A stretch of 64,000 bases of DNA from positions 248,882-312,881 of the forward strand of contig NIVC01000769.1 in NCBI GenBank assembly GCA_002269645.1, given 5' to 3'. The notes beneath the pieces were generated by a model that saw only the letters and a program-made list of their open reading frames with translations, had not been told where the DNA came from and did not search any database. This stretch comes from Macrostomum lignano (taxonomy: Eukaryota). Each line of letters starts with the position of its first letter. Position 1 is the stretch's first letter. Position numbers and translations under genes: made by a program. This document shows positions 33,727-64,000 of this stretch, one piece after another.

Positions 33727-34194
33727 TTTTTTGAACGTTGTAAATTTTAGCATTTAGGCATTTAATTACTGAAGGAGTTTAAAATTTGTTTCGAATTGGC
33801 TGTGCTCTGATTTACAGAGTTCTACGCTGTCGGCACTGTTTGCTCGCACCCTGCGACGCGGGTGCTGCCCGCTGTAGCTGTGCGGGACAGACAAACTTCA
33901 AGAGAAAAAAGTAAAATTAGTAATAATTGTGCGCTGATTGGCAGCAATCGTAAAGAGCTGCGTTTACCTTAAGACTGAAAATTTTATTGAAATCGATTTG
34001 CCGCTGAAAATTATCTTTGATCCTAAATTTTCAATCAATGTTGCGATCTCGATATTACATTTGAGTCTGATAGTACTCAACTGTTACCTGTAGCGCGTAG
34101 TTTGCATCACAGCTTATGAGCTGTCGCTTCTCCGACCTTATTTATCCCAAGAAGTTGGGATGCTATAGTTTTAAAGCAGCATTCAGTCATGAGA

Positions 34195-36262: not shown

Positions 36263-37117
36263 ATACCTATCATAGACCCAGCTCGCCGCACTGCCGCTCC
36301 GCAGGTGTGCCCGCTGTCAGCCAGGGGGCTCCGTCGTGCCGCTCTGCCTCTTCGCCTCTGTTTTCAACGCGAGCGGAAACTCGGTGGCGGGTATTGAGCT
36401 ATAAACCTATTTATAAGATTTACAAGTATTTTTTATACTATTTTTTGATTGTTTGACGGCAAACAGTTTTGTTTAAAATACCTCAATTTTCGTGAATTTA
36501 ACTTTTCAACTTTTTTACCCGCAATCATTTTGATCTAACAGTTTAATTGATATAGTGAAATAATTCAATTTGATTCATTCATTCAAAGTTTTTCTGTTTT
36601 TTTGATAGATTTTTTCCTAAGTTTGATTATTTTTTGATTGCAGCATTTAAAATTAGATAAAAATTGACAAAAAATTGGTGCTTTCGTCTCGAGTTAACTT
36701 ATTTCTACGATTTACTCCTTGAGCAACTTGTCTACGACTTTTTAGATTAATATTATTCTACTCATACTGCTGATTAATACGATAGTTCATTGTTTAAACA
36801 TTTCTAGACTATGCACTGGTTTTATTGTATTAAATTAATTTTTGTCAAATACAATCCCAGTCCTTGGCAAAACTTGTTTCTATTCAACTTCTCCATGGTG
36901 ACAAAATGTTTGTTTTGCATTAGTTGATTACTTAAAGTAGTAAGTATTGAGGCTTTATGTGGTGATTGACCTAAAAAGCCGGGCCGTTTAGGGACTGCAT
37001 AGCTCTGTTTCCATTAGCACAGAAAACTTCCCCGAACTTATTTGATTGCTTCTAGAGGATATGCCTCGCAGTGGAATAATACTAATGTGCTTTTCTCAGC
37101 CATTGCTTCAGAATTAG

Positions 37118-43510: not shown

Positions 43511-45571
43511 TCTGCTTTGAGTCTAAGTCTGCCTAAACTCTAAATACTTCCTATTTGTTTTGGTTATTTTAGCCAGCATAAAATTCAATACTCCAAGCTT
43601 TAAGAACTCGGGATAGAAGTACCGAAAAAAGAGATTTCAATAGATTTCTCTTCTTGCTAGCATACAAGTCAGCAATGTGAGACTAAATGATTGTTAGAAA
43701 CTACAATCACATGATACATACGGACAACTTCTTTCTTGTATTGCGGATTGTGGGGTTGAAAATGTTGATGCCAAATTAGTCTGAAAATTGACCTGGCAGC
43801 AGTGCAGTGAGCACACAACGATGTTTTCTCTCTTTACGCCTGTTCATCTCCCTCAGCTGCAGTGGGTGATAATAGGGAAATGCGGGTCTTTGTGAACTCA
43901 TGTGGGCTGAGATTTTCAATGACGCCACAGCCTTTGCTGAACAAGCTCTGAATTGAGTGGCTGACACCCCTTTTTAGTCAGTCTTAGTGAGCCTGGCAAC
44001 CTCTACTAGCCAGCGAGGAGGCAAGCAGCCGTGCCATCCCGCTAACCCCTGCGCACACGGATCTGTGCGCACAGGGTGTACACCCGTCTGACCTCATGGT
44101 CTCATATACTGATTCAATGACCAAACCGAGGGCGAGTCAGTCTGGCAATGCTGAGCGTAGCTAAACGAGAACACGTGGTGTCTCAAAAGCTGACAGATCG
44201 TTGAGTGGTAAAGATAAGAACGTGAGCCTGATGCCTGACACGAAGCGAAACATGTCGCTTACCAAAAAGTGATAGCGCTCAAATTCTTATTTTCACTATT
44301 CATCAAGGGCGCAACTTTACCGCAATATTGCTTTGAAATGGTAAAGAGCATTCTAGCCTCACTGTTGTGTAGTGCGTCTATCAGGTTCTGCGGACACACC
44401 TTCCGCCAATCTGGCACAGAACTAGATTGCCTGTTGAGGCTCTTATCACCGCTAAGAAGCTTGAAAAGCCTTCAGTTCTACGTGTGAACAGCCAAGGAGA
44501 TCTTGAATTAGAATCTGGAGTGACAACTTTTCCTCATTATCCGACAAATAGAGGCAAATTTTGGCATTTTCTTGTAGAAACGCGAGGAGTTGCTACTCTA
44601 GATTCTTGTTGACGGCCTCCTCGGACCAGCTGGAATGAGTCAGGCCGGCCGTGGGCCTCACAGATAAGGAAGACCAGATTACGCCGCTTCTCTGGCTGTT
44701 ATGCCCCCCGCTGCAGCCAATATAAGCGGTGCAGCGAGCGGAGTTCACAATAGCGCACCCGACCAGTGTTTCAGTTTCTCAGCATTTCCGCGGCGCTGCC
44801 CAACCGATTTAAAGCGACCAAGGCAAGCTTATAAAGCAGTTGTTTTCACTAGCTTCAAACAGGTACGAGGCGAGTTGATTGATTCTCTGAATGAGGTCAT
44901 GAGTGAGTTAATCAGTGAGTTCATGAGTTCATGGGTGAGCTCGTGAGTTCAAATAATGAGCCAAGGTGTGTTCGATGTAATTAGTAGGAGGAGAGCAAAT
45001 CGTGGCTAAGAATTTTGAAAGATGAATACGTAAAACTAATCACGTCCAAGTCTCTCCTATATTTTAAGTAGATGGGAGAACAGATATATATCCTCATTTT
45101 ATTTACTTCGCTCCCATTGGCTGTGACAATAGGCGGAATAGCATCCATTTAAACCTAGGGCTCACGCCAAGGACTACCAATTAATGGTCCTCGAAGGGGA
45201 TATTCAAAAGTCAACTCTAATAACACAGTCAGTTGAGTACATTGGGATGTACACCAAAGACATTCAGAATCAATGTAGGAGCTTACACACCATTCTTGCC
45301 TGCAACCGTCTTGTGCGCAACTCTAGCTTTGAAGAGCTCGCCTCCACATGCAGCCACGTTAATTTTGCCGAGAGGTGCAGCCTATGTGAGTGCCGTGAGC
45401 GTGTGTACTCAGGGGTCAGCGGATCGGGCATGACTGCTCGCCTCCTCTTTGGCTGCTGGATGACTGCCGTTTTGATTTTCAGCAGCACCCAATGCTCCCT
45501 GCAAACCTGGGCTAACTAGCTAGACTCTGCCTTTATTAGAACTCCTCATTCACCCCTCAGATCCCGTCGCT

Positions 45572-46711
45572 ATGGCAGCCCCGTGCACGGTTACCATGGA
45601 GATGATCACTGAAGCGACCGACTTTGTGCGCGCCCGCTACTCGGAGCAGCCGGAGATCGGGATCGTCTGCGGCTCTGGCCTGGGTGAACTGGCCGACAGT
45701 GTCGAGGAGCCGGCTGTGCGCATCCGCTATGGCGACATCCCGCATTTCGCGCAGAGCACGGTGCACGGCCACTCCGGCGTGCTGGTGCTCGGCCGGCTGG
45801 CCGGCAGGCGGGTCTGCGTCATGCAGGGCCGGCTTCATCCCTACGAGGGCCTCACCTACCTGCAGTGCTCCTTCCCGATGCGGGTGATGGCCAAGCTGGG
45901 CGTGTCGGTGGTCATCTTGACCAACGCGGCCGGCTCACTGCGGCCTGAGTTCCAGCCAGGCGACATCATGACCATCCGGGATCACATTAATTTTCCCGGC
46001 TTCTCCGGACGCAGCCCGTTGCAGGGCCTCAGCCCGGAGGTGTTCGGCGACCGATTTGTGCCGATGAATAATGCGTACGATAAGAAGCTGCGGGACAAGG
46101 TGAGAGGACTGCGACCCTACGGTGATTTTTTGGGAGCCCACTTTACCGTAGCATGTTCACAGAATTCAACTGAAGGAAAGTGTTCTCAACATCGGATCCT
46201 AACGTTTGAAGGTCAAATACTATTCACGGATAAATATGTCGCTATTATTCGTAACTTACTTAGTCGCTGTCTCTGTCTTGAGCTCTGAATCTACTACCGA
46301 TGTGGGAATGACCATAAACAACTCCATGTCAAGCATCAATTGACTGACACGGCCGCCGTGCACCGTCCCGCTTTCCCGCAGGTGGCAGCCGCAGCCGCAG
46401 CCAGCGGAGTGTCGCTCCGCACCGGCGTCTACGCTATGCTGGGCGGGCCGCACTTCGAGACTCCGGCCGAGTGCCGAATGCTGCGCAGTCTGGGCGCGGA
46501 CGTGGTCGGCATGAGCACCGTGCACGAGACCATCGTGGCCAGGCAGTGCAAAGTCCGCGTCATCGGCTTCTCCATCATCACCAACGTGGTGGTTACCGAC
46601 TCGGACTCGGAGCTTGACCAGACCGGCGTGCACCTGGAGGTGCTCAAGGCCAGCAAGCTGGCCGCCAATCGGCTGCAGTCCATCATCGCCCACACCATCG
46701 ACCAGTTGTAG
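45572..46711 (+). CDS. PNP: Purine nucleoside phosphorylase (trimeric, family 2), 285 aa; exons 45572-46099, 46382-46711
   Basis: GIVCGSGLG, VHGHSGVLVLG, MQGRLHPYEG, LTNAAGSL, GPHFETPAE, GADVVGMSTVHE, FSIITN (catalytic E, M, N present). Phase-0 GT-AG intron. Confidence 0.96.
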
Positions 46712-47096
46712 CCAATGCTGTTCAGAGTCCGTATTGTGGGTCAAACTGCGAATGCCCGTACGCCACTGCATGAACTGCTGAATCCCCTTCCTTAGGATGT
46801 TGGACCCGAGAGTTTGCTAGTCAGTTTTAAATGCTCCGATTTGCGAGTTCAGTCGACTTTACTTGATAAAGTCTCCCTGGTTTTGAATAAACTATAGTAC
46901 AGCGATTTCTGCTACAAAAACCAGTAAGCTGCTGCAGTTGATAAGCAGCTCGTACTGACTAAAAAATAAGAATTGGTTTTTACCTTTTTTCTATTTTATA
47001 TTTCAATTCTAATAAGAATATGTTACAAATTTACCAACAAAGATGCCATGCGGAATTGATAAAGAATACACATTTTCTTCTCTTGTAGCTCTTCTT

Positions 47097-47229
47097 AGTT
47101 CCTCCCCTGGTGTCGCACAGCATCTCCCACCAGCTCAGTTCCTCCCCTGATGTCGCACAGCATCTCCCACCAGCTCAGTTCCTCCCCTGATGTCGCACAG
47201 CATCTCCCACCAGCTCAGTTCCTCCCCTC
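47097..47229. repeat. Three 40-bp tandem repeats directly abutting the RYK stop codon (3'UTR)
   Basis: AGTTCCTCCCCTGATGTCGCACAGCATCTCCCACCAGCTC x3. Confidence 0.9.
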
Positions 47230-50200
47230 TCATACATAGACGCTTATCGTGTCATGAAATCCCGCAAGCGCCGCTTGAAGTTGCTTCAGTCGAGGCCGGC
47301 AGTCCGGTCGATAATGCCAGCAGCTGTGCATGATGGAGAATCTGAAATGTGTTAAAACCATCGACACAGCCTGATGGCTCCACATCTTTCCATCGCGTTT
47401 TCGAGAGGACAGGCGGTGTACATATTTGACAGCATTTTTTGCATTATCTGCGAGCTTAAATAGAAGTAGTGCCTCAAGTTCGATTCTGACTACTTGAAAT
47501 AGAGAATAAACCTCACAGCTGGTCCGGACAGTTGGTCGGCTTCGTCAATCTGAAGCCTTGGCGCAGATGGCGGCTCATCTCCAGCGGGTCAACTCGACTG
47601 TACGGCTGCTGGCACCTGGTGATGAGCTCCCAAAGCGTCACTCCCAGCGACCAAATGTCGGAGGCTGGCGAGAACTTTCGCTCGATCAGGGCTTCGACGG
47701 ACAGCCACTTGACTGGTCGGCTGTCGCCGTCCCCTGTGCACTCGTAGTCCGCCGGGAACAGGTCCTTGGCCAGGGCCGCGTCCCCGATGCGCACCGTACC
47801 GTCCGCCGTCAGGCTGCGGAGGGTGGCCAGGAGCAAGCTCTAGCAATGGACGCACTTTGTTATAAAGCTCTCAAAAAATCCTCACACGCAGTTGCGACAG
47901 GCGAGATCCCTGTGCACCACTTGCATGCGGTGCAGATAGGCCAGACCCTTGCCGATCTGCACCGCCATGTGCAGCAGCTGCTGTGTGGACAGGGTCTGGC
48001 GGAGGTAGTCGGGGGCGTACGAATTCTTAGTCTGCATGCGAGCGATACAGGGAGTTCTAGATAAGACCATCCGGATGGGGAAACCGACCGGTCACATCCA
48101 TTTTCCCTATTCTATCAAGATCAATAGATTTACTAGGCAGAGCTCCCGTGTTATTCAAGTGGCTTTCAAACGTTTTTTTCCTTGCCACAAAGCTGTCATT
48201 TTCATCACGCATTCGTCTATGCTTTCCGTGTTCCCAAAAATGGAATGAAGTTTTGTGTATGCACTAGCAGGATAAGCTTATGCAGAACCGAGCTTATTAA
48301 GGTTACAACAGATCGCCCTACTAACGAGTAGTAGGAAAGGACTGCAAAGGGAATCTTTTATTGTGTTGCACAAAGAGTTGCACACTGTAGATTCGAACGC
48401 TTGCCTACCGGTACTGGTGACTTCTTGTTCAAATCCCAGTTTTCGGGGGAAACATATTTAACAAGGTTAAAAAGAACTGAATTCCTACGAGTACTTAATA
48501 GGTAAGAAATTTGGGTCAATGAGAGTTTATCGCAAGTGAATTGCCCCGCGAGTGAAATTTCCCACTAGTGATTTGCTCGCGGAATGCATTAGCTTAGCAA
48601 GTAATTACCAGCGAAATTAAAAATCCTGCCTGTCATAACGTGACTCTCTGCTGCAACACCTGATGAAATTAAAAAATTGACCTGCAGTTGCTATCGAGTC
48701 ACTATCGGATTGACTTATTGAGCATTCCACGAAATATTGACCAGCAAATTCACTCCAGACAGAAAATTCTAATACCAAGGACAACTTTAGTAGAAGGACT
48801 CAACACTCGAAATCTATGGTAAATGTTTTGAAGGCCACTTTTCACCGAAAAATACACTACAGAGATTGGAGGTTTTAATTTTTCAGCACAAAAATTGTTA
48901 TTGCTTTCGATAGGAGGCAGACCCAGTGTTCATCTTTTGATATGTTGTGCCTTCCTTATAGCTCTATTGATATTCATAAAGCTTTTCGTTCAGAAAATTA
49001 GGATTCAAATGTTCAATTCTTATTCTAAGTACATTTGCATTTCTCCTGTGCCTAAAAATCATTAAAATGGCACGGCTCAGCTCATTGGTTTATGAATCCA
49101 TTTTGTCATTCTTAGCTGACTGTAACAATATGTGTAACAGAGATGATGAGGCCTTCAAAACATTTACCATAGATTTCGAGTGTTTCGTCCTATATACCGT
49201 GGCGCACAATGAATTGGGACTACCAAGTAAAATTATTTTTTTGGCATACTGGTCTTTGAACTAAATTCAAGTACTAAATTGGAAGTAAAACTTGTAGTAA
49301 TATTACTTTATGTTATTTATTTAGTATTTTGGCTCAATTTCCAGCAGTGTTTAGTTCAAAAAGCTGATATTTGAATGGGAAGTACAGTTTTAGGTTTAAC
49401 ATTGAAATAAGACCATATATAAATACTTGGGAAATAAGCCAAGCAAATGTCACTGATATCAAACTAACTACTCTAATACTTCGTAGCAGGTCCTTTTGAC
49501 TTAATCACACAGCATTGCACCGCCTAGGCATGCTGTCCACCAGCTTCTGGCACACTTCTGCCGCAATGGCAGCCCACGAGTCCTAAATGATACGGTACAG
49601 CTGATCAAGGGAAGCTGGCTGCTGCCTCTGGATGTCCGTCCCGCTCAACCCAGTTCCACCATTTCTTAATCGGATTGAGGTCTGGTGACTGCGCTGGCCA
49701 GTCCATGGTGCGGATGTTGTTCTCAGCAAGCCATGCATTCACAAACTTGGAGGTTTGCTTCGGATGGTTGTCCTGCTGAAACTGCCAGCTGTTCACTACA
49801 CCCAGTGGCAGCGCAACTACTGCCTCTTGTAGGTGGCTACCGAGGATGCCACGGTACTTCTGACTGTCCATGACGCCCTCAATGCGAGTTATTGGCCCAG
49901 GCCCAGCTCACAATCCAGCCCACACCATGACATTACCACCTCCATGCTTCATGGTACCAACGGTGCACCTGGGATCGAGTTCCTCACCAGCTCGGTGGCG
50001 CACATATTGGCGGCCGTCAGAATCAGTGCGGGAAATTTGCTCTCGTCACTCCAGTTGGTCTTGGCCCAGTCCTGGGGTGTCTAGCTTGCATGCTGCTTCG
50101 GCCAGTTCAAGCGCCGCTTCCCGGTTTTTGTCGGAGATAAACGGCTTCTTCCTAGCAATGCGGCCTTGCAGTCCAGCAGCTACCAGACGGCGGCGGACAG

Positions 50201-53200
50201 TCATGGGGTGCAGCTGGACACCACTGGGCACCAGAAGTTCACGGCTGATGTCCACAGCGGTGAGCCGACGGTTTGACTCGGACACTCGCACAATTCGTCG
50301 ATCCAGTCCGTGGTCAGTTTTCGGTGCCCTGCCAGGTCTTGGGGCACAGCCTGTGCTGCCTGTGCTGCTGAGGCGCCTGAGGGCTTGCTGGACGCGTGTT
50401 TTTTTTACTTTCCCAGCTGCGTGGCTTTGGCTCGCTGGGAAACTCCTTGGTCGAACAGGATCTTTATTTTGCTACACGACTCAGGCGATAGAGCTCTGCC
50501 TTTTCCCATTCTGGGAGAGTTCAAGATCATTTTTTGCTTGGAGTAGTATTCATTCATAGTAATTCATTGTGCGCCACTGTATATGTTACTTGAGTAGTCC
50601 TTGTCTAATACTCCATGAGCGACAGTCTACGGGAATGCGGGGCTGTAATGCTCACGCTCACGTGGTCCGGCCGGCCGGCGCGGCTGTCGATCAAGCGCAG
50701 CTTCAGGTTGCCGCCAGCCGGGTTGGGGTAGATCAGGTGCGGCCTGGGATCGCCGGGCGGCATGGTCGAGGCAAGCAGCGGATTGACGTGCCTGTGCTGC
50801 AGGCCGGCCAGCAGGACTCCCGACTGCGACACGGCGCTCAGCTGGTCAAGCCGGGCAGCCTCTGCTCGTGCAGCGATGAAGGAAAAACGGCAGCTGAGCC
50901 TTTCATTGTCCGGTTTAACTGGACAGCTTACTCGACCTCCCATTAAGTTTTTTGAGTTCAGGACCTAGAGTGAGCACACCTGTGCTTGTCTTCAGGACCT
51001 AGTGTGAGAAACACCTGTGCTTGTCTTCAGGACCTAGTGTGAGCACACCTGTGCTTGTCTTCAAGATTTAGAGTGAGCACACCTGTGCTTTCATACAGGG
51101 CCAGAGTGAGCACACCTGTGCTTTCATACAGGGCCAGAGTGAGCACACCTGTGCTTTTCATACAGGGCCAGAGTGAGCACACCTGTGCTTTTCATACAGG
51201 GCCAGAGTGAGCACACCTGTGCTTGCCTTCAGGACCTAGTGTGAGAAACACCTGTGCTTGTCTTCAGGACCTAGTGTGAGCACACCTGTGCTTGTCTTCA
51301 AGACCTAGAGTGAGCACACCTGTGCTTTCATACAGGGCCAGAGTGAGCACACCTGTGCTTTCATACAGGGCCAGAGTGAGCACACCTGTGCTTTTCATAC
51401 AGGGCCAGAGTGAGCACACCTGTGCTTTTCATACAGGGCCAGAGTGAGCACACCTGTGCTTTTCATACAGGGCCAGAGTGAGCACACCTGTGCTTTCATA
51501 CAGGGCCAGAGTGAGCAAATGAGCAACCATCTAGCCGCAACTTGATGGGTTGCTGAACACCAGAACCCATCTCTTAATTGCCTGCAGCCGGTCATTAATT
51601 AGATATTTATCCTGAGTTTACAGTTATGCTGTTCTAAATTGACTTGGCCAGCGGAAACAAAACTGCTCTGCTTTTTTAACATCGATTTATCAGTGGATTA
51701 ATAACTTTTTCCATAGGCGTAATGGAACTGGCGAGCTGGAATAGTTTTTCTCTGCTAGATTATTAAGTTCGTATGCCGCTATTCCAAGCTAGCAAGCTTG
51801 CTCTAAGCAATTCCTGCATTCCAATCGATGCCTCACTGGCTGTCGGCTTCGACCAGGCCTGTTCCCACGCACACCCGTCAGCCCCCGGAGAGCCCGCTGC
51901 CGCTCAACCCGCAGCTTCTCGACGCTCACTTTGCCTGGCAATCAGGAAATTGCATTCGACCGGGACTGCGATGCCCAAGGTTGGGAAACAGGGGGCGGGG
52001 CTGCGTGAGAAATATCCCACGCCATCCAACGTTTCCCATCGGGACTGCGGGTAGTTGGTTGGTTTTCGTTTCCACTGGCTAAACGCACTTTGCTGTCCAG
52101 TTTGTAATCGCCTGGCAGTTGCGGATAGAGGGACGATAAATTCGCTCAAAGAGCTTAGATGAGAGAAGAGTGACATAGTTTGCTTGTGTTTTTTTCGGCA
52201 GAAATGTGCTTTTATAGTTGGATCCGAGAAATTCTAAAATCGTGCGTTTATTGATGTCTATGAATTTAGTGCTTTGGAATGGGATTGTGTTGGAATCATG
52301 CTTTGCAGAATTGCGGTGTTGGAATGGGAGTTGGAGTTGCGGAGTTGGAACTGAGGTGCTGTAATTGGGGCTGGCGGAGTTGAAGTGCTGGAATCTGGGT
52401 GGCTGGAATTGGGATGCTGGAATTGGGGTGCTGGAATTGGGGTGCTGGAACCTGGGTGGCTGGAATTGGGATGCTGGAATTGGGGTGCTGGATTTGGGGT
52501 GCTGGAATTGGGTTGCTGGAATTGGGGTGCTGGAATTGGGGTGCTGGAACCTGAGTGGCTGGAATTGGGATGCTGGAATTGGGGTGCTGGAATTGGGGTA
52601 CTGGAATTGGGGTACTGGAATTGGGGTGCTGGAATTAGGGCGCTGGAATTGGAATGCTGGAACCTGGGTGGCTGGAATTGGGATGCTGGAATTGGGGTGC
52701 TGGAACCTGGGTGGCTGGAATTGGGATGCTGGAATTGGGGTGCTGGATTTGGGGTGCTGGAATTGGGGTGCTGGAATCTGGGTGCTGGAATTGGGATGCT
52801 ATAATCTGGGTGGCTGGAATTGGGGTGCTGGAATCTGGGTGCTGGAATTGGGATGCTGGAATTGGGGTGCTGAAATTAGGGTGTTGAAATCGAAGTGTTG
52901 GAGTTGGGTGGCGTTGGAATATGCTGGTAAAATTTGGAGTTAGTTTTAATCAGCATCCCCAATCATCGATTACCATACATGTAATTATGAACGTTAATTG
53001 GCTAAACCGAAATCGCCCTCGATTCAGCCACTCACCGACCACTGTCTTGATCAGCACCTCCTCGCGCCCACTCTTGACGATGTTCCTACCACGGCCGTGG
53101 GGCGGCTCCCAGCTGCCTCGGTACACCAGACCGTAGCAGCCTGCAGTGTGGCGGGCGTGCTTCAGAGTTCTCACGCAGCCAGCACCTGAAATATCTGGAC

Positions 53201-56200
53201 CGAAGTCAATATATCTGGTCACAGGGCTCACCTTCCATTAGGGTGTACTCAAGGCTGACTGTATGCCACGCGGTTTGAACCTTCAACAGAATGTCCCGAG
53301 GGCTACTGATGCGGCGTTGCACTATGGGTGAGGCGCCCAACTGGTGGCTGGGCTGGTCTGCAGGCGGTGGAGCGAGGATAGGGATTTAATCTTAGATATT
53401 AGACATCTACCTTAGACATCTACTCTGAGCCTTAGACATCTACTCTGAGCCTTAGACATCTACTCTGAGCCTTAGACATCTACTCTGAGCCTTAGACATC
53501 TACTCTGAGCCTTAGACATCTACTCTGAGCCTTAGACATCTACTCTGAGCCTTAGACATCTACTCTGAGCCTTAGACATCTACTCTGAGCCTTAGACATC
53601 TACTCTGAGCCTTAGACATCTACTCTGAGCCTTAGACATCTACTCTGAGCCTTAGACATCTACTCTGAGCCTTAGACATCTACTCTGAGCCTTAGACATC
53701 TACTCTGAGCCTTAGACATCTACTTTGAGCCTAATGGGCTGTAGTCTAGTGATTAGAGCGTCGGACTCACGATTTAAAGGTCGGGGGTTCCATTCTCGAC
53801 CCACTCGGAACAATTTGTGTCCTTGAGCAAGACACAACTCTGCATTGCTTCAGTTCACCCAGCTGTAAAATGGGTGCCAGCATTAGCTGGGGTAATTGAG
53901 GCTGTGTGTGGCGACCCCCCAGTCCTTGGACTGAACAGCCGTACGCAGCCTTCAGATGCGCCGAGCAATAACTGCGGCTGAGCTGTTGGTTGTACATCTG
54001 ACCAACTGGGGCAGGTGCAATCAATTGTTATTATTATTTTCTCTTAAATAAGGCTGAGACATTTTCTCTCAGCCTTAGACATCTCTCAGCCTTGGATATC
54101 TCTCAGCCCTAGACATCTACGAGTACTCTCTTAGCCTTAGACATCTACTCTCTCAGCCTTAGACCACTACTCTGAGCCTTAGACATTCTCACTCAGCCTA
54201 TTTATTGTGAGTTATACACAGCTTTCAGAAATTGAATCAATAGGAGCATTCCCAGATCTATAATTCTCAGCGTCGTCTCACTGGAGGAGGTGGCCCTGCT
54301 GGTCAGGCTGCAGCTGTCCGACCCGTCGCTCCAAATCACTGCCGTGCTCTGCAGCGTGCGGCCTTTTAACGCCGCCGCTTTGCCAGCCGACGCAGCTGCG
54401 GTGGCGGCGCCAGAGCTGGCCTTTTTCAAGCGGAAGCAGCGGCATAGCAGCAGGTAGGTGACCGCTGCCGCGGCCAGCAGCGCCACAAGCAACACAAACA
54501 GCAGCGGGAGCAGCAGTCTCAATGCCGCTGGCGTGCGCACCGCGACAGCCGCCTGATTGGTTTCAGAGAGAACTGACTGCTCTCGTGTCTCTGCTGTAGA
54601 CTTGTTATCTGACTTTGGCTTCTCTTCTGTAAATTTTTCAATGAAATCAAGCTTTAAATTCATTGAGAGAGTTTGACGTATTTTTGTATTTAATATACGA
54701 GTGTAATTGGTAGTTAACTTCTGGCTTTTGCTCTCCAAGATACTTCAATTTTTATCACAACACCCTTCCCAATACCCCAGTTCCCTTCCCACCACCCCAG
54801 TTCCCTTCCCATCCCCTCCAATTCTCCTCCCACCACCCCAGTTCCCTTCCCACCACCCCAGTTCCCTTCCCACCACCCCAGTTTCCTTCCCACCACCCCA
54901 GTTCCCTTCCCACCACCCCAATTCCCTTCCCACCACCCCAATTCCCTTCCCACCACCCCAGTTCCCTTCCCACCACCCCAGTTTCCTTCCCACCACCCCA
55001 GTTCCCTTCCCACCACCCCAATTCCCTTCCCACCACCCCAGTTCCCTTCCCACCACCCCAGTTCCCTTCCCACCACCCCAGTTCCCTTCCACCACCCCAG
55101 TTCCCTTCCCACCACCCCAGTTCCCTTCCCACCACCCCAGTTCCCTTCCCACCACCCCAGTTCTCCTCCCACCACCCCAGTTCCCTTCCCACCATCCCAG
55201 TTCCCTTCCCACCACCCCAGTTCCCTTCCCACCACCCCGGTTCCCTTCCCACCACCCCAGTTCCCTTCCCACCACCCCAGTTCCCTTCCTACCGCTCAGC
55301 AAACTCCGGCGATTCCCGGCAGTCCGGCCGCACAATTTTCGCCTGCGAATCCGCAGTTGCACAGGCGGCTCGCCAGGCCGTAGGGTGACATTCAGCAGGA
55401 TGGCCAGCGGAACCTCGGCGAGCGCTGCCCCAGTGCAGGGTAGCGAGGCGTCGAATGCTGCAATTTAAACAAAAGCGATTGTAAAAAAATTCGGCATAGC
55501 TTTCGTTCTGAGAAAAATATTCGTCTACTGGCCAATAATTTTGCTCCCTTTCCGTCAACCTTTGCAGTCGTTATCACCTTCTGTCTCCTTTACGTCTTTC
55601 GACGCCAAGAATTGCCTTATTTTTCGAAGCTTTATTGGATAGAAAAGCAGGGCGAAGTACATGTGCTTCCATTTTGATTTGCTTTTCTCTTGGCTGTCAC
55701 ACCTGGCGCCTCTCCGATCCCCCCACATTAAACCAGGACACACACACTATTCACCTTAGGCCGCTCAATCCCTCAGTCTCGTGTCCTCAGTCCCTCAGTT
55801 TCAGTCCCTCAGCCTCAGTCCCTCAGTCTCGTGTCTTCAGTCATTAGCCCCTCAGTCCCTTTTGTCCCACAGTTACTCAATTCCAGTATCGTGTACTCAG
55901 TCCCTCAACCTCAGTCCCTCAGTACCTCAGTCCCTCAGTCTCATGTCCTCAGTCCCCCAGTCTCATGTCCTCAATCCCTCAGTCTCACTTCCTCAATCTC
56001 TCAGTCTTAGATCCTCAACCCAGTATCCCTACTTGAGTCGGCGTGCGGCACGAATCCCTGGGCAGCAATGCTTAACACTGGCGAGCCCATGGCTTTCTGG
56101 TCCTCCACCGAGAAGCCGATCGAGTAGGGCATCTGAAATTATTGTATCGCTTACGAATAGATTACGCGTTCACTGCTAAAACTAGACGAATTAATTAAAT

Positions 56201-57177
56201 AATCACTTCACGTTGACTGCGAGCTACATTGCGAGCTCAATTACATTGCGACCATCTAACTGTCCCCAAAGTGGTATCAAATGCGAAAGCAAAAGTGGCA
56301 AAATATGCCATTATTGGTGGAAAAGCGAGTTTTTTGTTGTTCCAAAACAGTTGGCTTTTCTTCCAACCGCCGATAGCCCACTCGCCTCGTGGCCGGCCCT
56401 GTTGGCCCAGCGAAATCGCAGCTTTGCCACCGACAGCGGCACGGAGATGCTGAAGCCGAGCGCGTATTTGTTCACCGTGCCATTGAACACGTAAAAGACC
56501 CTGGAGGCGTTGCCTGATCCTGCGGGTTGAGCCAGTCTGCCTTTCATAGGGCCTGTCCTTGTGTCTGTCTCAGTGTCTGACCGGGTGTCTGTCATGTCTG
56601 TCCTAGTGTTTATGTGTCTGTCCTAGTGTCTCTCCGGGTGTCTGTCCTAGTGCTTCTGTGCCTGTCCTAGTGTTTCTGTGCCTATCCTAGTGTTTTTGTG
56701 TCTATCCTATTGTTTTAGTGTCTCCGGGTGTCTGTCCTAGTGTTTATGTGTCTGTCCTAGTGTCTGTCCGGGTGTCTATCCTAGTGTTTTTGTGTCTGTC
56801 CTAGTGTTTTTGTGTCTATCCTATTGTTTTAGTGTCTCCGGGTGTCTGTCCTAGTGTTCTAGTGTTTGTCCGTGGTGTCTGTCCTAGTGTTCTAGTGTTT
56901 GTCCGGGGTGTCTGTCTTAGTGTTCTAGTTTTGTCCGTGGTGTCTGTCTTAGTGTCTATCATATTGTTTTAGTGTCCGTCCTAGTGTCTATCTAACTTAG
57001 TTTCTGTTAGAATTAGTGAGGCTGATTCACAGCCAGATTAATAAGAAACTTACTGACAGCAGCTCTCATATCATTGCGGGTCACATAGAGGTCAAGCAGT
57101 CCAGCACCGAGAGGCAAACTCTCGAGCAGCCCTAGTAGAAGCAGCATCATCATCAGTGGTGCCAGCTTCTCAGCCAT
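47230..57177 (-). CDS. RYK: RYK/Derailed Wnt-binding receptor tyrosine pseudokinase; exons 57054-57177, 56386-56519, 56033-56132, 55293-55457, 54282-54626, 53232-53357, 53036-53140, 50662-50861, 47886-47995, 47517-47813, 47230-47341
   Basis: Signal peptide; WIF domain (FYVFNGTVNKYALGFSISVP..LRFRW; MPYSIGF..AMGSP..QGFVP; CTG..EV..RRRKLC); TM helix; kinase with EGCYG, VLIKTV, GNLKL, HRDLACRNCV, DAALAKDLFP, RPVKWLSVE, SDIWSLGVTLWEL; PDZ-binding C-terminus VYV. All splice phases are consistent. Confidence 0.93.
49197..50579 (-). mobile_element. Tc1/mariner DNA transposon, full-bounded but inactivated, in RYK intron 8
   Basis: 19-bp TIRs (CCGTGGCGCACAATGAATT / AATTCATTGTGCGCCACTG, 18/19 match), each flanked by TA. 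Minus-strand transposase fragments RRLTAVDISREL..TVRRRLVAAGL.GRIARKKPFIS and FQQDNHPKQTSK..WPAQSPDLNPIK, broken by frameshifts. Confidence 0.92.
50960..51517. repeat. 33/34-bp minisatellite (GAGTGAGCACACCTGTGCTTTCATACAGGGCCA plus a CTTCAGGACCTA variant) in RYK intron 7
   Basis: About 16 copies of two variants in a duplicated block arrangement. Confidence 0.94.
52300..52920. repeat. 14-bp minisatellite (GGAATTGGGGTGCT) in RYK intron 7
   Basis: About 40 imperfect copies. Confidence 0.94.
53400..53733. repeat. 20-bp minisatellite (TTAGACATCTACTCTGAGCC) in RYK intron 5
   Basis: About 16 near-perfect copies; degenerate copies resume at ~54065-54200. Confidence 0.96.
53736..54037 (+). mobile_element. 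tRNA-derived SINE family B with CORE-like central domain
   Basis: GGGCTGTAGTCTAGTGATTAGAGCG (A box), GGTTCCATTCTC (B-box-like), GTGTCCTTGAGCAAGACAC..GCTTCAGTTCACCCAGCTGTAAAATGGG (53817-53874, resembling the recalled MIR/CORE consensus), TTA-repeat tail. Confidence 0.75.
54770..55290. repeat. 20-bp purine/pyrimidine-asymmetric minisatellite (CAGTTCCCTTCCCACCACCC) in RYK intron 4
   Basis: About 26 copies; begins at the donor dinucleotide (55292). Confidence 0.96.
55765..56010. repeat. Degenerate 8-bp repeat (CTCAGTCC) in RYK intron 3
   Basis: Direct reading. Confidence 0.85.
56558..56995. repeat. Degenerate TGTCTGTCCTAGTG repeat in RYK intron 1
   Basis: Direct reading. Confidence 0.88.
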
Positions 57178-58196
57178 GTTAGCGCAGCCTGTTGAGGCTG
57201 AGTTGGCATCGGCATGTTGCAATTTGTTTGGATATTTGAGCAACTGCGGAGCAAATGGACTCCGCGGTTGGCTTTCCACCAATCGCCAGTCGAAAATAAA
57301 AGATCGCCGAGTCAGTTAATCCAGTTGCCTACTTCTAGTAGCTAATTGACATGTATTTTGAAAGCCAATAATGTTGAATTACAGTTAATGAGCGCGCTAC
57401 AGTCGCAATTCAGACCGAAGAGGCATTTTCAGTTTTTAGTTATTATTTCTCACTACATATAACTCTAACTCCGTATCAGTTATTACAGGCGCTCTGCTCG
57501 AACTCGTTAATAAATTACCCAAATACTTCTCAGACACTACATGATTGCTACCCAGACACTGCTCGAATGCTAGTCGGAAACTACTCAGACACTACTCGGA
57601 CACTACTCGGATATTACTCGGACACTACTCTGAGTACACTACACTCGTTTTGTGTGCTAATATTATCGAGTTATATTACGAAGAGACTAGATAGCACCTA
57701 GCTTTATTCGTTTAGTGTATGCTCGTAAGTTTCACGTTTACAAGTTAACGAACTCATTGCTTGAACATTACGGCCTATTGATGTCACTACGAAGGTAGGC
57801 TAACTTGTACGTAGACCCAGAGAAACAGGTAGAAAAAGCAGAAGCACAGTAAGACTTTCTCCGGTTGCAAGTAAATTGCCCTTACTTTTTAACCAAAAAT
57901 TTTTCCTGGATACTACGAGTACTATAAAATAAAGCATTAAAATGTCAAATACAAGGTAAATGCAAGCTATCATTTATAGTTTCGGCTCATATGATTTTTG
58001 TTTCGGCCTGAATGTTATAAAAACCGGTTAAAAAGATTCAAACCAAAATTAGAGTAGACAGTTAAAGCAAAACTTTAATCAGCCCTCAATGCCGCAAACA
58101 TGTATATTTGTTTCAGTCGATTCCGCTTATTCCGATAAAGTTAAAAAAGAGAAAGAAAAACGGTTTCTACTCAACAGTCTGTCAAAGTAAATTTTG

Positions 58197-61100
58197 TCAG
58201 CGCTTGCCGCGACGCGACCCGCAACAGACGCCGCCGGTGGAGACTTTCGAAGACTCCGATTTCAGCGACGGGTCAGACGAGTCGGGCCAAGCCGCGGACG
58301 GCGAAGGCGGTGGCGGCGCCAAATTCTCGCGCAGAGTTGACCATGGCTGGGCTGGCCGGGCCACAAACTGGCTCACAATGATGCGGCCGAGCAGCAGGCG
58401 GAGCGCGCCGCAGTCGCTAACTCAGGCCGAGTCCAATTGTCAAGCAGCCAGCGCGCTCGCGCGTCCCAATCATATTCAGCAGGCCGCTCATCCTTCCTAA
58501 CCGAAGCAGTGGACACCGAGTCAGCATCGGTGGAGGCGTCGTTGCTCGCGTGAACCTCTCGAATCTTGCCTTCCAAATATCGCATTGCTCGCTCCATCTG
58601 GGACTCCAGCTGAGCCCAGTCTACGGAGGTGGCTCCACGAAACTGACTAAACACAATGCGACCAAGTAGCGGCTTTGGTCGGCGTCGCTAAGCGCGCTTA
58701 TATGTGGAAACATTGGCGCCTTTCACTGAGGAAGTTTTAGAGCCAGATGCAGCACCAGCTTTATTGGCTCCTGCAGCCGCTTCATCAGCACCAGCACCAG
58801 TTTTTTCAACAACAGCTTTTTACGTCACCTGAACCAGAGTCATCTGCATCGGCACAGCTTCATCGAATTTTCAGAGTCTGCAAACCATATTGGCCAGCAC
58901 TTTGTTGATTCTCGAGAACGCTCTGAAGTTTATCACTGTTTACTCGTATTTTTTTAGGGATGGGAAAACGCTGTTGGACTCGAAGCCACGATTCGCCATC
59001 GAAATCCGACAAATTGCGAATGCTTCGATAGGGAGAAATTGCACGGTCGACAGATCGCTCCTCCATCTCTTTGAAGACAAGCGCTCAACAGAAGCTGGGC
59101 GTTCAAAAACTGACACAGAGCAAAAAAGAGCCAGTGGAAATAAAGTAGACTCATCAGACGAACCGCGCCAAAAAGCTCGACGAGAAATACTCATGCTTCG
59201 ATCAGCCGAATATCCATCCTCTTGCACATCCAAGCAAAGCTGACTAAACGAAACACTGCTGCTACCATCGAAAAATTCTGATGATTCGAAACCATCAGAT
59301 AAAACGTCCACCTCCGGGTTACAAATAACATCAAGGAGAAAGCGTAACTCGTTGACAACATCCAAAAACGAACTGTCATCCTAGAAGCTGCAAAAATATT
59401 CCTTTCCTTAAGACACCCTGCCTCATCGAGCAAGTCCAGCTGGTGTCGCACGTCTTCGTCTACTTGCTTGTCGGCCTGATCTATTTCGACGAACTTGAGT
59501 TGATCCTCTTTGAATCGGCGCTCCGCTCTTGCAATGTCGCGGCGAGCGCGCTCATCGCGACGTCGTCGTTCGCGGCGACGGTGGCTCACGAGCTCTTCTA
59601 GACGCATGGCTTCTCGCTCTCGCTCCCGCTCTGGCGCCTTCAACTTGTCTTCTTTGCGCATTGGAGGCAGATCCTCTTCGATCTCGCTGGCTTCGCGATC
59701 TTCTAATACTTTGTCATCGAACAGGTCTATCTGGCGTCGCACGTCTTCGTCTACTTGCTTGTCGGCCTGAACAATCTCGTCTACCTCGAATTCATCGTCT
59801 TCGAATCGGCGCTCCGCTCTTGCAATGTCGCGGCGAGCGCGCTCATCGCGACGTCGTCGTTCGCGGCGACGGTGGCTCACGAGCTCTTCTAGACGCGCGG
59901 CTTCTCGCTCTCGCTCCCGCTCTGGCGCCTTCAACTCGTCTTCTTTGCGCATTGGAGGCAGATCCTCTTCGATCTCGCTGGCTCGCGATCTTCTAATACT
60001 TTGTCATCGAACAGGTCTATCTGGCGTCGCACGTCTTCGTCTACAGTACGCTTGTCGGCCTGAATCGATCTGTCGACCTGAATTGATCGTCTTCGAATCG
60101 GCGCTCGCCCTTGCAATGTCGCGGCGAGCGCGCTCATCGCGACGTCGTCGTTCGCGGCGACGGTGGCTCCCGAGCTCTTCTTGACGCGCGGCTTCTCGCT
60201 CTCGCTCCCGCTCTGGCGCCTTCAACTCGTCTTCTTTGCGCATTGGAGGCAGATCCTCTTCGATCTCGCTGGCTCGCGATCTTCTAATACTTTGTCGTCG
60301 AACAGGTCTATCTGGTGTCGCACGTCCTCGTCTACCAGTACTTCTTCGTCGGCCTGAACAATCTCGTCGACCTTGAATTGATCGTCTTCGAATCGGCGCT
60401 CCGCTCTTGCAATGTCGCGGCGAGCGCGCTCATCGCGACGTCGTCGTTCGCGGCGACGGTGGCTCACGAGCTCTTCTTGACGCGCGGCTTCTCGCTCTCG
60501 CTCCCGCTCTGGCGCCTTCAACTCGTCTTCTTTGCGCATTGGAGGCAGATCCTCTTCGATCTCGCTGGCTTCGCGATCTTCTAATACTTTGTCATCGAAC
60601 AGGTCTATCTGGCGTCGCACGTCTTCGTCTACTTGCTTGTCGGCCTGAACAATCTCGTCTACCTCGAATTCATCGTCTTCGAATCGGCGCTCCGCTCTTG
60701 CAATGTCGCGGCGAGCGCGCTCATCGCGACGTCGTCGTTCGCGGCGACGGTGGCTCACGAGCTCTTCTTGACGCGCGGCTTCTCGCTCTCGCCCGCTCTG
60801 GCGCCTTCAACTCGTCTTCTTTGCGCATTGGAGGCAGCTCCTCTTTGATCTCGCTGGCCTCGCGATCTTCTAATACTTTGTCGTCGAACAGGTCTATCTG
60901 GTGTCGCACGTCCTCGTCTACCAGTACGTCTTCGTCGGCCTGATCGATCTGATCGACCTTGAATTGATCCTGTTTGAATCGGCGCTTCGCCCTTGCAATG
61001 TCGCGGCGAGCGCGCTCATCGCGACGTCGTCGTTCGCGGCGACGGTGGCTCACGAGCTCTTCTTGACGCGCGGCTTCTCGCTCTCGCTCCCGCTCTGGCG

Positions 61101-64000
61101 CCTTCAACTCGTCTTCTTTGCGCATTGGAGGCAGATCCTCTTCGATCTCGCTGGCCTCGCGATCTTCTAATACTTTGTCGTCGAACAGGTCTATCTGGTG
61201 TCGCACGTCCTCGTCTATCAGTACTTCTTCGTCGGCCTGAACAATCTCGTCGACCTTGAATTGATCGTCTTCGAATCGGCGCTCCGCTTTTGCAATGTCG
61301 CGGCGAGCGCGCTCATCGCGACGTCGTCGTTCGCGGCGACGGTGGCTCACGAGCTCTTCTTGACGCGCGGCTTCTCGCTCTCGCTCCCGCTCTGGCGCCT
61401 TCAACTCGTCTTCTTTGCGCATTGGAGGCAGATCCTCTTCGATCTCGCTGGCCTCGCGATCTTCTAATACTTTGTCGTCGAACAGGTCTATCTGGTGTCG
61501 CACGTCCTCGTCTACCAGTACGTCTTCGTCGGCCTGATCGATCTGATCGACCTTGAGTTGATCCTCTTTGAATCGTCGCTCCGCTCTTGCAATTTCGCGG
61601 CGAGCGCGCTCATTGCGACGTCGTCGTTCGCGGCGACGGTGGCTCGCAAGCTCTTCTTGACGCGCGGCTTCTCGCTCTCGCTCCCGCTCTGGCGCCTTCA
61701 ACTCGTCTTCTTTGCGCATTGGAGGCAGATCCTCTTCGATCTCGCTGGCCTCGCGCGCTTCTAACTCTACGTCATCGATCAAGTCCAGCTGGTGTCGCAC
61801 GTCTTCGTCTACTTGCTTGTGGCCTGATCATCTGTCGACCTTGAGTTGATCCTCTTGAATCGGCGCTCCGCTCTTGCAATTCGCGGCGAGCGCGCTCATG
61901 CGACGTCGTCGTTCGCGGCGACGGTGGCTCACGAGCTCTTCTTGACGCGCGGCTTCTCGCTCTCGCTCCCGCTCTGGCGCCTTCAACTCGTCTTCTTTGC
62001 GCATTGGAGGCAGATCCTCTTCGATCTCGCTGGCCTCGCGATCTTCTAATACTTTGTCGTCGAACAGGTCTATCTGGTGTCGCACGTCCTCGTCTACCAG
62101 TACTTCTTCGTCGGCCTGAACAATCTCGTCGACCTCGAATTCATCGTCTTGAATCGGCGCTCCGCTTGCAATGTCGCGGCGAGCGCGCTCATCGCGACGT
62201 CGTCGTTCGCGGCGACGGTGGCTCACGAGCTCTTCTTGACGCGCGGCTTCTCGCTCTCGCTCCCGCTCTGGCGCCTTCAACTCGTCTTCTTTGCGCATTG
62301 GAGGCAGATCCTCTTCGATCTCGCTGGCCTCGCGATCTTCTAATACTTTGTCATCGAACAGGTCTATCTGGCGTCGCACGTCTTCGTACTTGCTTGTCGG
62401 CCTGAACAATCTCGTCTACCTTGAATTGATCGTCTTCGAATCGGCCCCGCTCTTGCAATGTCGCGGCGAGCGCGCTCATCGCGACGTCGTCGTTCGCGGC
62501 GACGGTGGCTCACGAGCTCTTCTTGACGCGCGGCTTCTCGCTCTCGCTCCCGCTCTGGCGCCTTCAACTCGTCTTCTTTGCGCATTGGAGGCAGATCCTC
62601 TTCGATCTCGCTGGCTTCGCGATCTTCTAATACTTTGTCATCGAACAGGTCTATCTGGCGTCGCACGTCTTCGTCTACTTGCTTGTCGGCCTGAACAATC
62701 TCGTCTACCTCGAATTCATCGTCTTCGAATCGGCGCTCCGCTCTTGCAATGTCGCGGCGAGCGCGCTCATCGCGACGTCGTCGTTCGCGCGACGGTGGCT
62801 CGAGCTCTTCTTGACGCGCGGCTTCTCGCTCTCGCTCCCGCTCTGGCGCCTTCAACTCGTCTTCTTTGCGCATTGGAGGCAGATCCTCTTCGATCTCGCT
62901 GGCCTCGCGCGCTTCTAACTCTACGTCATCGATCAAGTCCAGCTGGTGTCGCACGTCTTCGTCTACTTGCTTGTTGGCCTGATCCATCTGATCGACCTTG
63001 AGTTGATCCTCTTTGAATCGGCGCTCCGCTCTTGCAATTTCGCGGCGAGCGCGCTCATTGCGACGTCGTCGTTCGCGGCGACGGTGGCTCACGAGCTCTT
63101 CTTGACGCGCGGCTTCTCGCTCTCGCTCCCGCTCTGGCGCCTTCAACTCGTCTTCTTTGCGCATTGGAGGCAGATCCTCTTCGATCTCGCTGGCCTCGCG
63201 ATCTTCTAATACTTTGTCGTCGAACAGGTCTATCTGGTGTCGCACGTCCTCGTCTACCAGTACTTCTTCGTCGGCCTGAACAATCTCGTCGACCTTGAAT
63301 TGATCCTGTTTGAATCGGCGCTCCGCTCTTGCAATGTCGCGGCGAGCGCGCTCATCGCGACGTCGTCGTTCGCGGCGACGGTGGCTCACGAGCTCTTCTT
63401 GACGCGCGGCTTCTCGCTCTCGCTCCGCTCTGGCGCCTTCAACTCGTCTTCTTTGCCCATTGAGGCAGATCCTCCGATCTCGCTGGCTTCGCGATCTTCT
63501 AATACTTTGTCATCGAACAGGTCTATCTGGCGTCGCACGTCTTCGTCTACTTGCTTGTCGGCCTGAACAATCTCGTCTACCTCGAATTCATCGTCTTCGA
63601 ATCGGCGCTCCGCTCTTGCAATGTCGCGGCGAGCGCGCTCATCGCGACGTCGTCGTTCGCGGCGACGGTGGCTCACGAGCTCTTCTAGACGCGCGGCTTC
63701 TCGCTCTCGCTCCCGCTCTGGCGCCTTCAACTCGTCTTCTTTGCGCATTGGAGGCAGATCCTCTTTGATCTCGCTGGCCTCGCGATCTTCTAATACTTTG
63801 TCGTCGAACAGGTCTATCTGGTGTCGCACGTCCTCGTCTACCAGTACTTGCTTCGTCGGCCTGAACATCTCGTCGACCTTGAATTGATCGTCTTCGAATC
63901 GGCGCCCGCCCTTGGCAATGTCGCGGCGAGCGCGCTCATCGCGACGTCGTCGTTCGCGGCGACGGTGGCTCACGAGCTCTTCTTGACGCGCGCTTCTCGC
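58197..64000 (-). CDS. 3' part of a giant unknown protein: about 15 copies of a 97-99 aa E/R/D-rich repeat followed by a unique C-terminal region. Fragmented by one-base indels; 5' end lies outside the window.
   Basis: ORFs 59191-59952, 60222-60758, 60721-61800, 61828-62409, 62364-63389 and 63386-63973 all encode the same repeat. Downstream pieces (58940-59365, 58860-59066, 58373-58647, and a frame ending RRGKR* at 58197) are joinable only with frameshifts or short introns, so the structure is tentative. Confidence 0.6.
59420..64000 (-). repeat. 291/297-bp coding tandem array
   Basis: Period visible from equivalent ORF starts 60901, 61198, 61495 (297 bp apart); 291-bp variant carries ADKQVDEDV. 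Confidence 0.95.

Follow-up and report, generated by a model that had tools for sequence, protein, structure and literature searches.

The probable 3′ end of an undescribed gene for a giant charged-repeat protein in Macrostomum lignano

Trichohyalin, a very large intracellular protein of the vertebrate hair follicle, is built of tandem E/R/Q-rich repeats and has been proposed to form an extended helix, stabilised by ionic bonds, that scaffolds the cytoskeleton. Single alpha-helices (SAHs) of the ER/K type, found in myosin VI and X, INCENP, drebrin and CAF-1 KER, serve as spacers and as springs of constant force (PMC4183817, PMC5812594). Mixed-charge domains of the R/D and R/E kind condense and target nuclear speckles (bioRxiv 10.1101/771592, PMC9324279). 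Two giant proteins of the flatworm Macrostomum lignano, Mlig-ap1 with 5,407 amino acids (aa) and Mlig-ap2 with 14,794 aa, are secreted and cysteine-rich, combine vWD, EGF, TSP, TIL or lectin domains with long tandem repeats (KR regions, or 255-aa and 221-aa repeats) and have no homologues outside flatworms (PMC6410801). Here we describe a tandem array of charged 97/99-aa units on the minus strand of a 64,000-nucleotide stretch of M. lignano DNA, hereafter the window (assembly GCA_002269645.1, contig NIVC01000769.1, or C769, positions 248,882 to 312,881). We consider it probable that window positions 58197-64000 are the 3′ end of a real, undescribed coding gene, that the breaks in its reading frame are errors and that its product serves as a helical chain. 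The region most likely encodes the end of a very large intracellular protein, namely its last ~16 units and its C-terminal tail.

A single tandem array, which we call array 2 of the giant gene, occupies 59423-64000 on the minus strand (period 297 bp, 15.7 copies, 92% matches, score 7604 in Tandem Repeats Finder); the peptide blocks quoted in the initial annotation are its minus-strand translation. The array stops at 64000 because contig C769 ends there (312,881), and it is truncated at this point on its 5′ side. Of the extent first given for the giant protein, 59420-64000, the array itself stands; the gene does not end at 59420, since the tail continues as far as a TGA at 58197-58199, and 64000 is not the true end of the array. 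Cutting at a conserved anchor yields 14 full units of 285-297 bp (288, 296, 291, 288, 287, 294, 285, 297, 297, 297, 289, 296, 291 and 291 bp). Unit alignment resolves four types, A and C of 291 bp and B and D of 297 bp (97/99 aa), the two pairs being separated by a single in-frame 6-bp indel plus substitutions. The description of the units as 291 or 297 bp long and frame-preserving is accurate for the type consensuses but not for the window sequence, where 4 of the 14 full units have a length that is not a multiple of 3.

Units follow one another in the order 5′>ABCAABCDBDABaA>3′ and lead into a degenerate terminal unit, which bears out the higher-order structure suspected from the letters alone. 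The recurring variant unit was found as well: its HQLDL motif matches exactly at 59431-59445 (in the degenerate terminal unit leading into the tail), at 61780-61794 (in the type C unit 61711-61995) and at 62934-62948 (in the type C unit 62865-63155), all on the minus strand and against a chance expectation of zero. The cleanest protein sample comes from 60820-61710 on the same strand, where three consecutive 297-bp units of types D, B and D, free of indels relative to the type consensus, translate without a stop into 297 aa (P0001); this segment was also modelled with AlphaFold.

A search of the whole assembly located the array-2 unit on four contigs only: C769 (window 59423-64000, minus strand), C167 (34167-44658, minus strand), C692 (136-11404, plus strand, from the contig start) and C2625 (4-38183, minus strand, likewise from the contig start). 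Because C769, C167 and C692 share their downstream flank at 98.5% identity, they are, judged by sequence, three copies of one locus, in agreement with the partly duplicated karyotype of the DV1 line (PMC5730564). On one strand of C167, a unique open reading frame (ORF) of 492 codons continues in frame into 20 units of a second repeat, array 1, with a 78-aa unit (LPVPDERGLLQEHEAFDKMYVYAEECVSWEEEAAHFEEERVPPALAREEELWRREEKKHFFEAVEEEAKKKPSAEEAD); further along come 35 anchor-defined array-2 units and then, without a change of frame, 416 unique codons up to a stop (ORF with tail, 32940-36788). Both C167 and C692 carry the tail intact, 416 codons long and ending in GGVCCGSRRGKR-TGA. Array-1 and array-2 units show no significant similarity to each other (E = 2.3).

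The corresponding tail in the window lies at 58197-59422 on the minus strand, as delimited by the C167 ORF, the window ORF pieces and a three-way alignment. It is split into pieces at 58940-59380, 58860-59084, 58373-58687 and 58197-58421 and carries window-private one-base indels, 9 gapped codons and two shifted-base clusters resembling paired indels. An internal duplicated motif (LLGRIVFSQFRGATSVDWAQLE and LLGRIIVSQFVARPAQPWSTLRE) is visible at ~58197-58690, and the tail terminates in CCGSRRGKR. Between the stop and the next ATG on the same strand is an AT-rich 3′ untranslated region or intergenic spacer (57177-58196, minus strand), in which an AATAAA at ~57706 can be read directly.

Contig C2625 (59,108 bp) consists of repeats only, with array 2 reaching to 38183 (~128 units) and array 1 running from ~38300 to the contig end (~89 units); alone it encodes ~19,600 residues. 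On this contig (38300-59108), 70 of the 83 anchor-to-anchor intervals of array 1 measure exactly 234 bp and have one and the same sequence; the 19 array-1 units at C167:46877-51480 differ by 2 substitutions in total. This homogeneity could result from very recent expansion or conversion, or from polishing toward the consensus. The orientation and unit types are compatible with a junction of the C769 end to the C2625 start, although it cannot be proved.

Taken together, the contigs suggest a unique N-terminus of ~570 aa without a signal peptide, followed by array 1 with its near-identical acidic, aromatic-containing 78-aa units, array 2 with its 97/99-aa units and the unique 416-aa tail; the gene appears to be one long exon. 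Adding to C2625 the two unique ends and that 3′ stretch of array 2 in which unit types are mixed, we estimate from these sequences a protein of >20,000 aa. The idea that the window array belongs to a giant protein is very probably right, C2625 implying ~20,000 aa or more.

No member of a known family was recognised at the outset, and the searches agree. Pfam gave no match above threshold for the unit, array 1, the N-terminus or the tail, and neither a PDB sequence search nor Foldseek against PDB gave a match. With phmmer, the sole hits among 1.84 billion representative proteins were four fragments or models from M. lignano. The protein matches, UniRef A0A1I8F6H6, A0A1I8F5B1 and A0A1I8HPW6 and NCBI entries with BOX15_ locus tags, are all from M. 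lignano, in line with the flatworm origin supposed at the outset. In a word-index protein search the tail had no match and the N-terminus matched only the annotation of M. lignano itself. Literature searches found no paper naming Mlig012748 or printing the unit peptide motifs, and nothing relevant on a described satellite.

Unit B (99 aa) contains 20 R, 4 K, 14 D and 21 E; it is 60% charged with a net charge of -11, the last 52 residues contributing -15. Its core SHRRRERRRRDERARRDIARAERR comprises 24 aa, 75% of them charged, with 13 R, 5 D/E and a net charge of +8. The array-1 unit has a net charge of -14. A 42-residue R/E block of the array-2 unit is 68% charged, with L21, V22 and I40 as its only large hydrophobic residues; the acidic half, read from the sequence, has V/I/L/F at every 3-4 residues and is hence amphipathic. 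An R/E-rich helical block followed by an acidic block, as initially described, is a fair account of the unit, but the label "basic" does not suit the first block, which is of mixed charge and has a net charge of +4 over the first 47 aa of the unit, the core included. Charge segregation within the unit is no greater than in shuffles (z = -0.4), and because it lies within the shuffle range the unit can be called a "block copolymer" only loosely.

AlphaFold, run on the three units without an alignment, predicts two helices per unit, at residues 5-62 (~58 residues) and 68-93 (~25 residues). The long helix covers the mixed-charge R/E stretch and runs on into the start of the acidic segment, and a low-confidence Pro-Pro hinge closes each unit. 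The mean predicted local distance difference test (pLDDT) score of the three-unit model is 76.9, rising to >90 over the R/E part, and the predicted template modelling (pTM) score is 0.24, with no compact fold. A model of the N-terminal fragment was uninformative (pLDDT 32.6). A spectrin-type repeat of ~106 aa was considered and rejected, as there was no Pfam hit and no PDB Foldseek hit and the two modelled helices form no bundle.

By analogy, the closest counterparts of this protein would be charged single-helix spacers or springs and E/R scaffolds of the trichohyalin type. With SAHs the unit may share a stretch of ~42 residues that is R/E-rich, poor in hydrophobics and predicted to be a long isolated helix (pLDDT >90). 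The resemblance to an SAH or ER motif, which had been pointed out earlier, nevertheless does not hold in its salt-bridge pattern, which is far sparser than in canonical ER/K helices: the unit has 6 i/i+4 and 12 i/i+3 opposite-charge pairs per 42 residues, against ~30 of each by our own count in a designed AEEEKRK repeat of equal length. In further contrast to SAHs, the core is net positive and devoid of Lys, the predicted helix extends into the amphipathic acidic segment, and the motif is repeated >100 times in the giant gene, whereas an SAH occurs singly, as a linker.

Trichohyalin, compared here without alignment, is likewise a giant intracellular protein of tandem charged E/R repeats. However, no search revealed sequence similarity to it, the giant gene lacks an S100/EF-hand head, the M. 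lignano unit is much longer and has two blocks, and the whole protein would be roughly ten times larger. Mlig-ap1 and Mlig-ap2 come from the same organism and resemble the giant gene in size and in their long tandem repeats, but none of their domains or repeat types occurs in it. Identity with either protein was rejected, since their domain, repeat and signal-peptide features are all absent. Because the giant protein does not demonstrably share the defining features of any of these groups, we place it in none of them.

We propose that the protein could form an intracellular chain on the micrometre scale, in which Pro-Pro hinges link semi-rigid charged helices; by our arithmetic the chain would measure ~3 micrometres if it were fully helical at 0.15 nm per residue. 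Inside one molecule or from one molecule to the next, the R-rich cores could zip electrostatically onto the acidic amphipathic helices, and the chain may act as a structural spacer, spring or scaffold.

The main functional rival to such a mechanical element takes the R-rich cores (RRRERRRRDERARRD) for arginine-rich mixed-charge domains driving a condensate in the nucleus or the cytoplasm, for instance a germ granule or a speckle-like body. The core does show R runs interleaved with D/E, its high charge density and net +8 over 24 aa are what a condensing domain might display, and one annotated N-terminus opens with the basic stretch MKRRKSKQNR. However, arginine-rich mixed-charge domains themselves are disordered, short and near-neutral, whereas this stretch is predicted to be helical with high confidence and is embedded in a strongly acidic 99-aa unit with hydrophobic stripes. 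Its charges are segregated no more than in shuffled sequences, and a protein of ~2 MDa would be an unlikely cargo for nuclear import. We therefore regard a condensate as an unlikely role.

A more basic question is whether the array encodes protein at all. Each intact array-2 unit is open in one of its six frames, and the other five have a stop in every unit. The open frame is in phase with the 416-codon tail, and on C167 array 1 likewise continues the phase of the N-terminal ORF; by our own estimate, the probability of obtaining the unique 416- and 492-codon ORFs by chance is ~1e-9 or less each. The tail coding sequence differs between C167 and C692 at 2 of 1248 nt, compared with 20 of 1200 nt in the non-coding DNA just downstream, which makes the tail ~10 times better conserved than its flank. 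None of 84 distinct substitutions collected from 192 units creates a stop in the open frame, where ~3.5 would be expected (P = 0.03); the same variants create 6 and 7 stops in the other two frames. GC content by codon position is 0.83, 0.33 and 0.60. The NCBI annotation of the assembly, which is based on RNA-seq-guided transcripts (PMC5730564), places a partial coding sequence, PAA56389.1 (Mlig012748.g2), in array 2 of C2625 in this same frame, and PAA89041.1, PAA53306.1 and PAA77023.1 (Mlig022173.g1 and.g3) span the N-terminus on three contigs. In view of this evidence, we hold with good confidence that the array region is protein-coding.

Several observations weigh against a giant intact gene. 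The NCBI coding sequences belonging to it are short and partial, and the searches made gave no homologue outside M. lignano and no domain; the structural role suggested above is hypothetical. Array variants comprise 22 synonymous and 62 non-synonymous changes, close to the neutral expectation of 21 and 60. Recurrent variants fall on the three codon positions in numbers of 22, 13 and 23, and the lower variability of the second position is non-significant. Codon-position bias in the variants had been put forward as the test of coding; because its signal proved weak and non-significant, the coding status rests on the other evidence. A codon-preference score, calibrated on the small number of certain genes in the window, failed to single out the frame, its reference set being too small. 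As assembled, the window holds no giant ORF, its longest piece in the array being 381 aa; no contig carries an intact copy of the array, and lengths that are not multiples of 3 affect 29%-55% of the units on every contig. The two arrays of C167 are separated by a 2.2-kb N gap, and their junction on C2625 is frameshifted. The size of the protein is likewise no more than an assembly-based estimate, because units cannot be counted reliably where an array outruns the reads. In addition, the ratio of non-synonymous to synonymous substitution in the tail could not be used between homeologues, since true substitutions are few and the differences of the window are indel artefacts.

Some of these points would also fit arrays that are a non-coding satellite, either an enormous intron that separates the exons of the N-terminus and the tail, or non-coding repeats that are transcribed; a GA/CG-rich 297-bp unit would then leave one frame open incidentally. 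Simple and tandem repeats make up 15% of M. lignano (PMC5730564), array 1 is open in 2 of its 3 sense frames, and a neutral substitution ratio, an insignificant codon-position bias and frameshifted units on every contig are what such a satellite might show. Other satellites in the window are open in several frames too. Tandem arrays at 34120-36077, 52079-52949, 54707-55468 and 55764-56989 have many open frames on both strands, as in GNRDTSPWETETHPHGKQ, FQHPNSSTPIPA and the 20-mer AGTTCCCTTCCCACCACCCC at 55000-55293, and an open frame in a repeat is for that reason weak coding evidence in this genome. However, a satellite would not readily account for a single open frame out of six that is in phase with the tail ORF, for the matching phase of array 1 and the N-terminal ORF, for a 6-bp length as the sole indel between unit types, for the absence of nonsense variants in the open frame, or for a coding sequence called inside array 2 by transcript-guided annotation. 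Moreover, indels exceed substitutions by ~5:1 and are biased to homopolymers, a signature of error and unlike natural decay. A satellite origin is in our judgement distinctly unlikely.

If the array is coding, the breaks in its frame need an explanation. The continuous giant frame initially assumed for the window is not there: the frame lies in six ORF pieces (59191-60003, 60222-60806, 60721-61827, 61828-62415, 62364-63509 and 63386-64000) because nine of the 14 units carry 1-2-bp indels relative to their type consensus, in 22 deletion and 3 insertion events, none of them a multiple of 3. Over 2.7 kb of unique tail and flank, the three-way alignment assigns 12 private indels to the window, 11 of them one-base deletions and most within short single-base runs; over the same 2.7 kb, C167 has 0 and C692 has 2. 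They are densest near the array and the contig end, with 8 in 58650-59400 and 3 over the next 1.3 kb, and many apparent substitutions of the window are shifted-base clusters, i.e. paired indels. In 106 type B units from C2625, deletions remove 227 bases and insertions add 10, against 49 substitutions; the deletions are ~4.6-fold enriched in 3-base homopolymers. The length distribution of units on all contigs has its peaks at 297 and 291 bp and trails off toward lower values, the sole unit above 297 measuring 298 bp. The unique DNA of C167 and C692, compared with each other, shows the usual surplus of substitutions over indels.

These private one-base deletions, their homopolymer bias, the scarcity of substitutions and the density at the contig end lead us to read the window frameshifts as, most likely, uncorrected long-read consensus errors and not decay. 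The Mlig_3_7 assembly was built from PacBio reads with Canu, polished with short reads by Pilon and scaffolded with SSPACE, and REAPR rated 64% of its bases error-free (PMC5730564). Such errors would persist here because short-read polishing fails within near-identical repeats.

Alternatively, the gene may be real and its C769 copy a decaying, redundant homeologue whose frameshifts are genuine mutations. Redundancy does exist, as the DV1 line has extra duplicated chromosomes (PMC5730564), and 12 private indels against 0 and 2 in the other copies would suit such a copy. However, the private changes are nearly all one-base deletions, mostly in short single-base runs, true substitutions are rare once the shifted-base clusters are discounted, and a rise in indel density toward the contig end is expected from falling consensus quality. 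Decay of this copy therefore appears very unlikely.

Finally, the initial suggestion of a flatworm adhesive, taken here as a material secreted for structure or adhesion (glue of the adhesive organ, say, or the content of rhabdites), recalls the giant repetitive adhesive proteins already known in M. lignano (PMC6410801) but is scarcely credible, since both annotated starts (MKRRKSKQNR... and MPLRQTV...) lack a signal peptide, Pfam found no vWD, EGF, TSP or lectin domains, and the architecture resembles neither the KR regions of Mlig-ap1 (pI >14) nor the 255-aa and 221-aa repeats of Mlig-ap2.

The coding gene with a consensus-damaged frame is in our view the better account, and what had been noticed from the letters alone is partly confirmed as observation and partly supported as interpretation. 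A bolder version of it would see a single-exon intracellular orphan of ~20,000-23,000 aa and ~2.4 MDa, among the largest animal proteins known, in which two almost perfectly homogenised arrays of charged helices evolve in concert, unit order differs between homeologues, selection holds the frame and the chains build a micrometre-long electrostatic filament or spring of a new class, in a particular flatworm cell structure (sperm, rootlets and the terminal web being examples). We offer this version tentatively and think it unlikely as a whole.

The gene is new as a described entity; giant charged tandem-repeat proteins are a kind already known, and nothing so far indicates a new principle. Should the gene prove intact, M. 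lignano would make a protein on the scale of titin without a recognisable domain, in a transgenic, RNAi-amenable model where the mechanics and electrostatic assembly of charged-helix arrays would be tractable, and it would offer a natural case for the upkeep of frame in giant coding arrays under concerted evolution. The gene is spread over at least four contigs and annotated as short "hypothetical" fragments and one chimeric UniProt model; because this annotation is fragmentary and chimeric, expression and proteomic studies miss or misassign it. The chimeric model is A0A1I8HPW6 (P0004, 3445 aa), publicly named "Ig-like domain-containing protein" and equivalent to ~46256-64000 of the window. 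It joins spliced repeat units, a partial tail, an RYK-like receptor and an antisense read-through of a gene resembling purine nucleoside phosphorylase (PNP).

A further acidic-repeat gene lies at 24834-33726 on the plus strand. Its unique N-terminal ORF of 846 aa has no Pfam match and precedes a long array of ~22-24-aa units (DAERVDQPANSAAASDTDLVEP), with frame breaks at ~28.2-29.6 kb. The initial annotation had suggested that this polyanionic giant might work together with the charged-repeat protein; it is a separate gene on the opposite strand.

Next to the giant gene on the same strand is an RYK-like receptor gene (~47230-57176, minus strand), which has its own ATG at ~57176 and encodes a signal peptide (MAEKLAPLMMMLLLLGLL), a WIF domain, a transmembrane segment and a tyrosine kinase; Pfam WIF and PK_Tyr are found in the UniProt model that contains its exons. 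Exon-like ORFs on the minus strand are at 57013-57315, 56311-56622, 54202-54744, 52950-53237, 50605-50964, 47882-48091, 47513-47839 and 47230-47544. Its 3′ end adjoins the PNP-like gene (45524-46711, plus strand; Pfam PNP_UDP_1, E = 9.5e-25). A Tc1/mariner-type transposase remnant with DDE_3 and HTH_Tnp_Tc3_2 domains (49605-50471, minus strand) apparently lies within an intron of the RYK-like gene.

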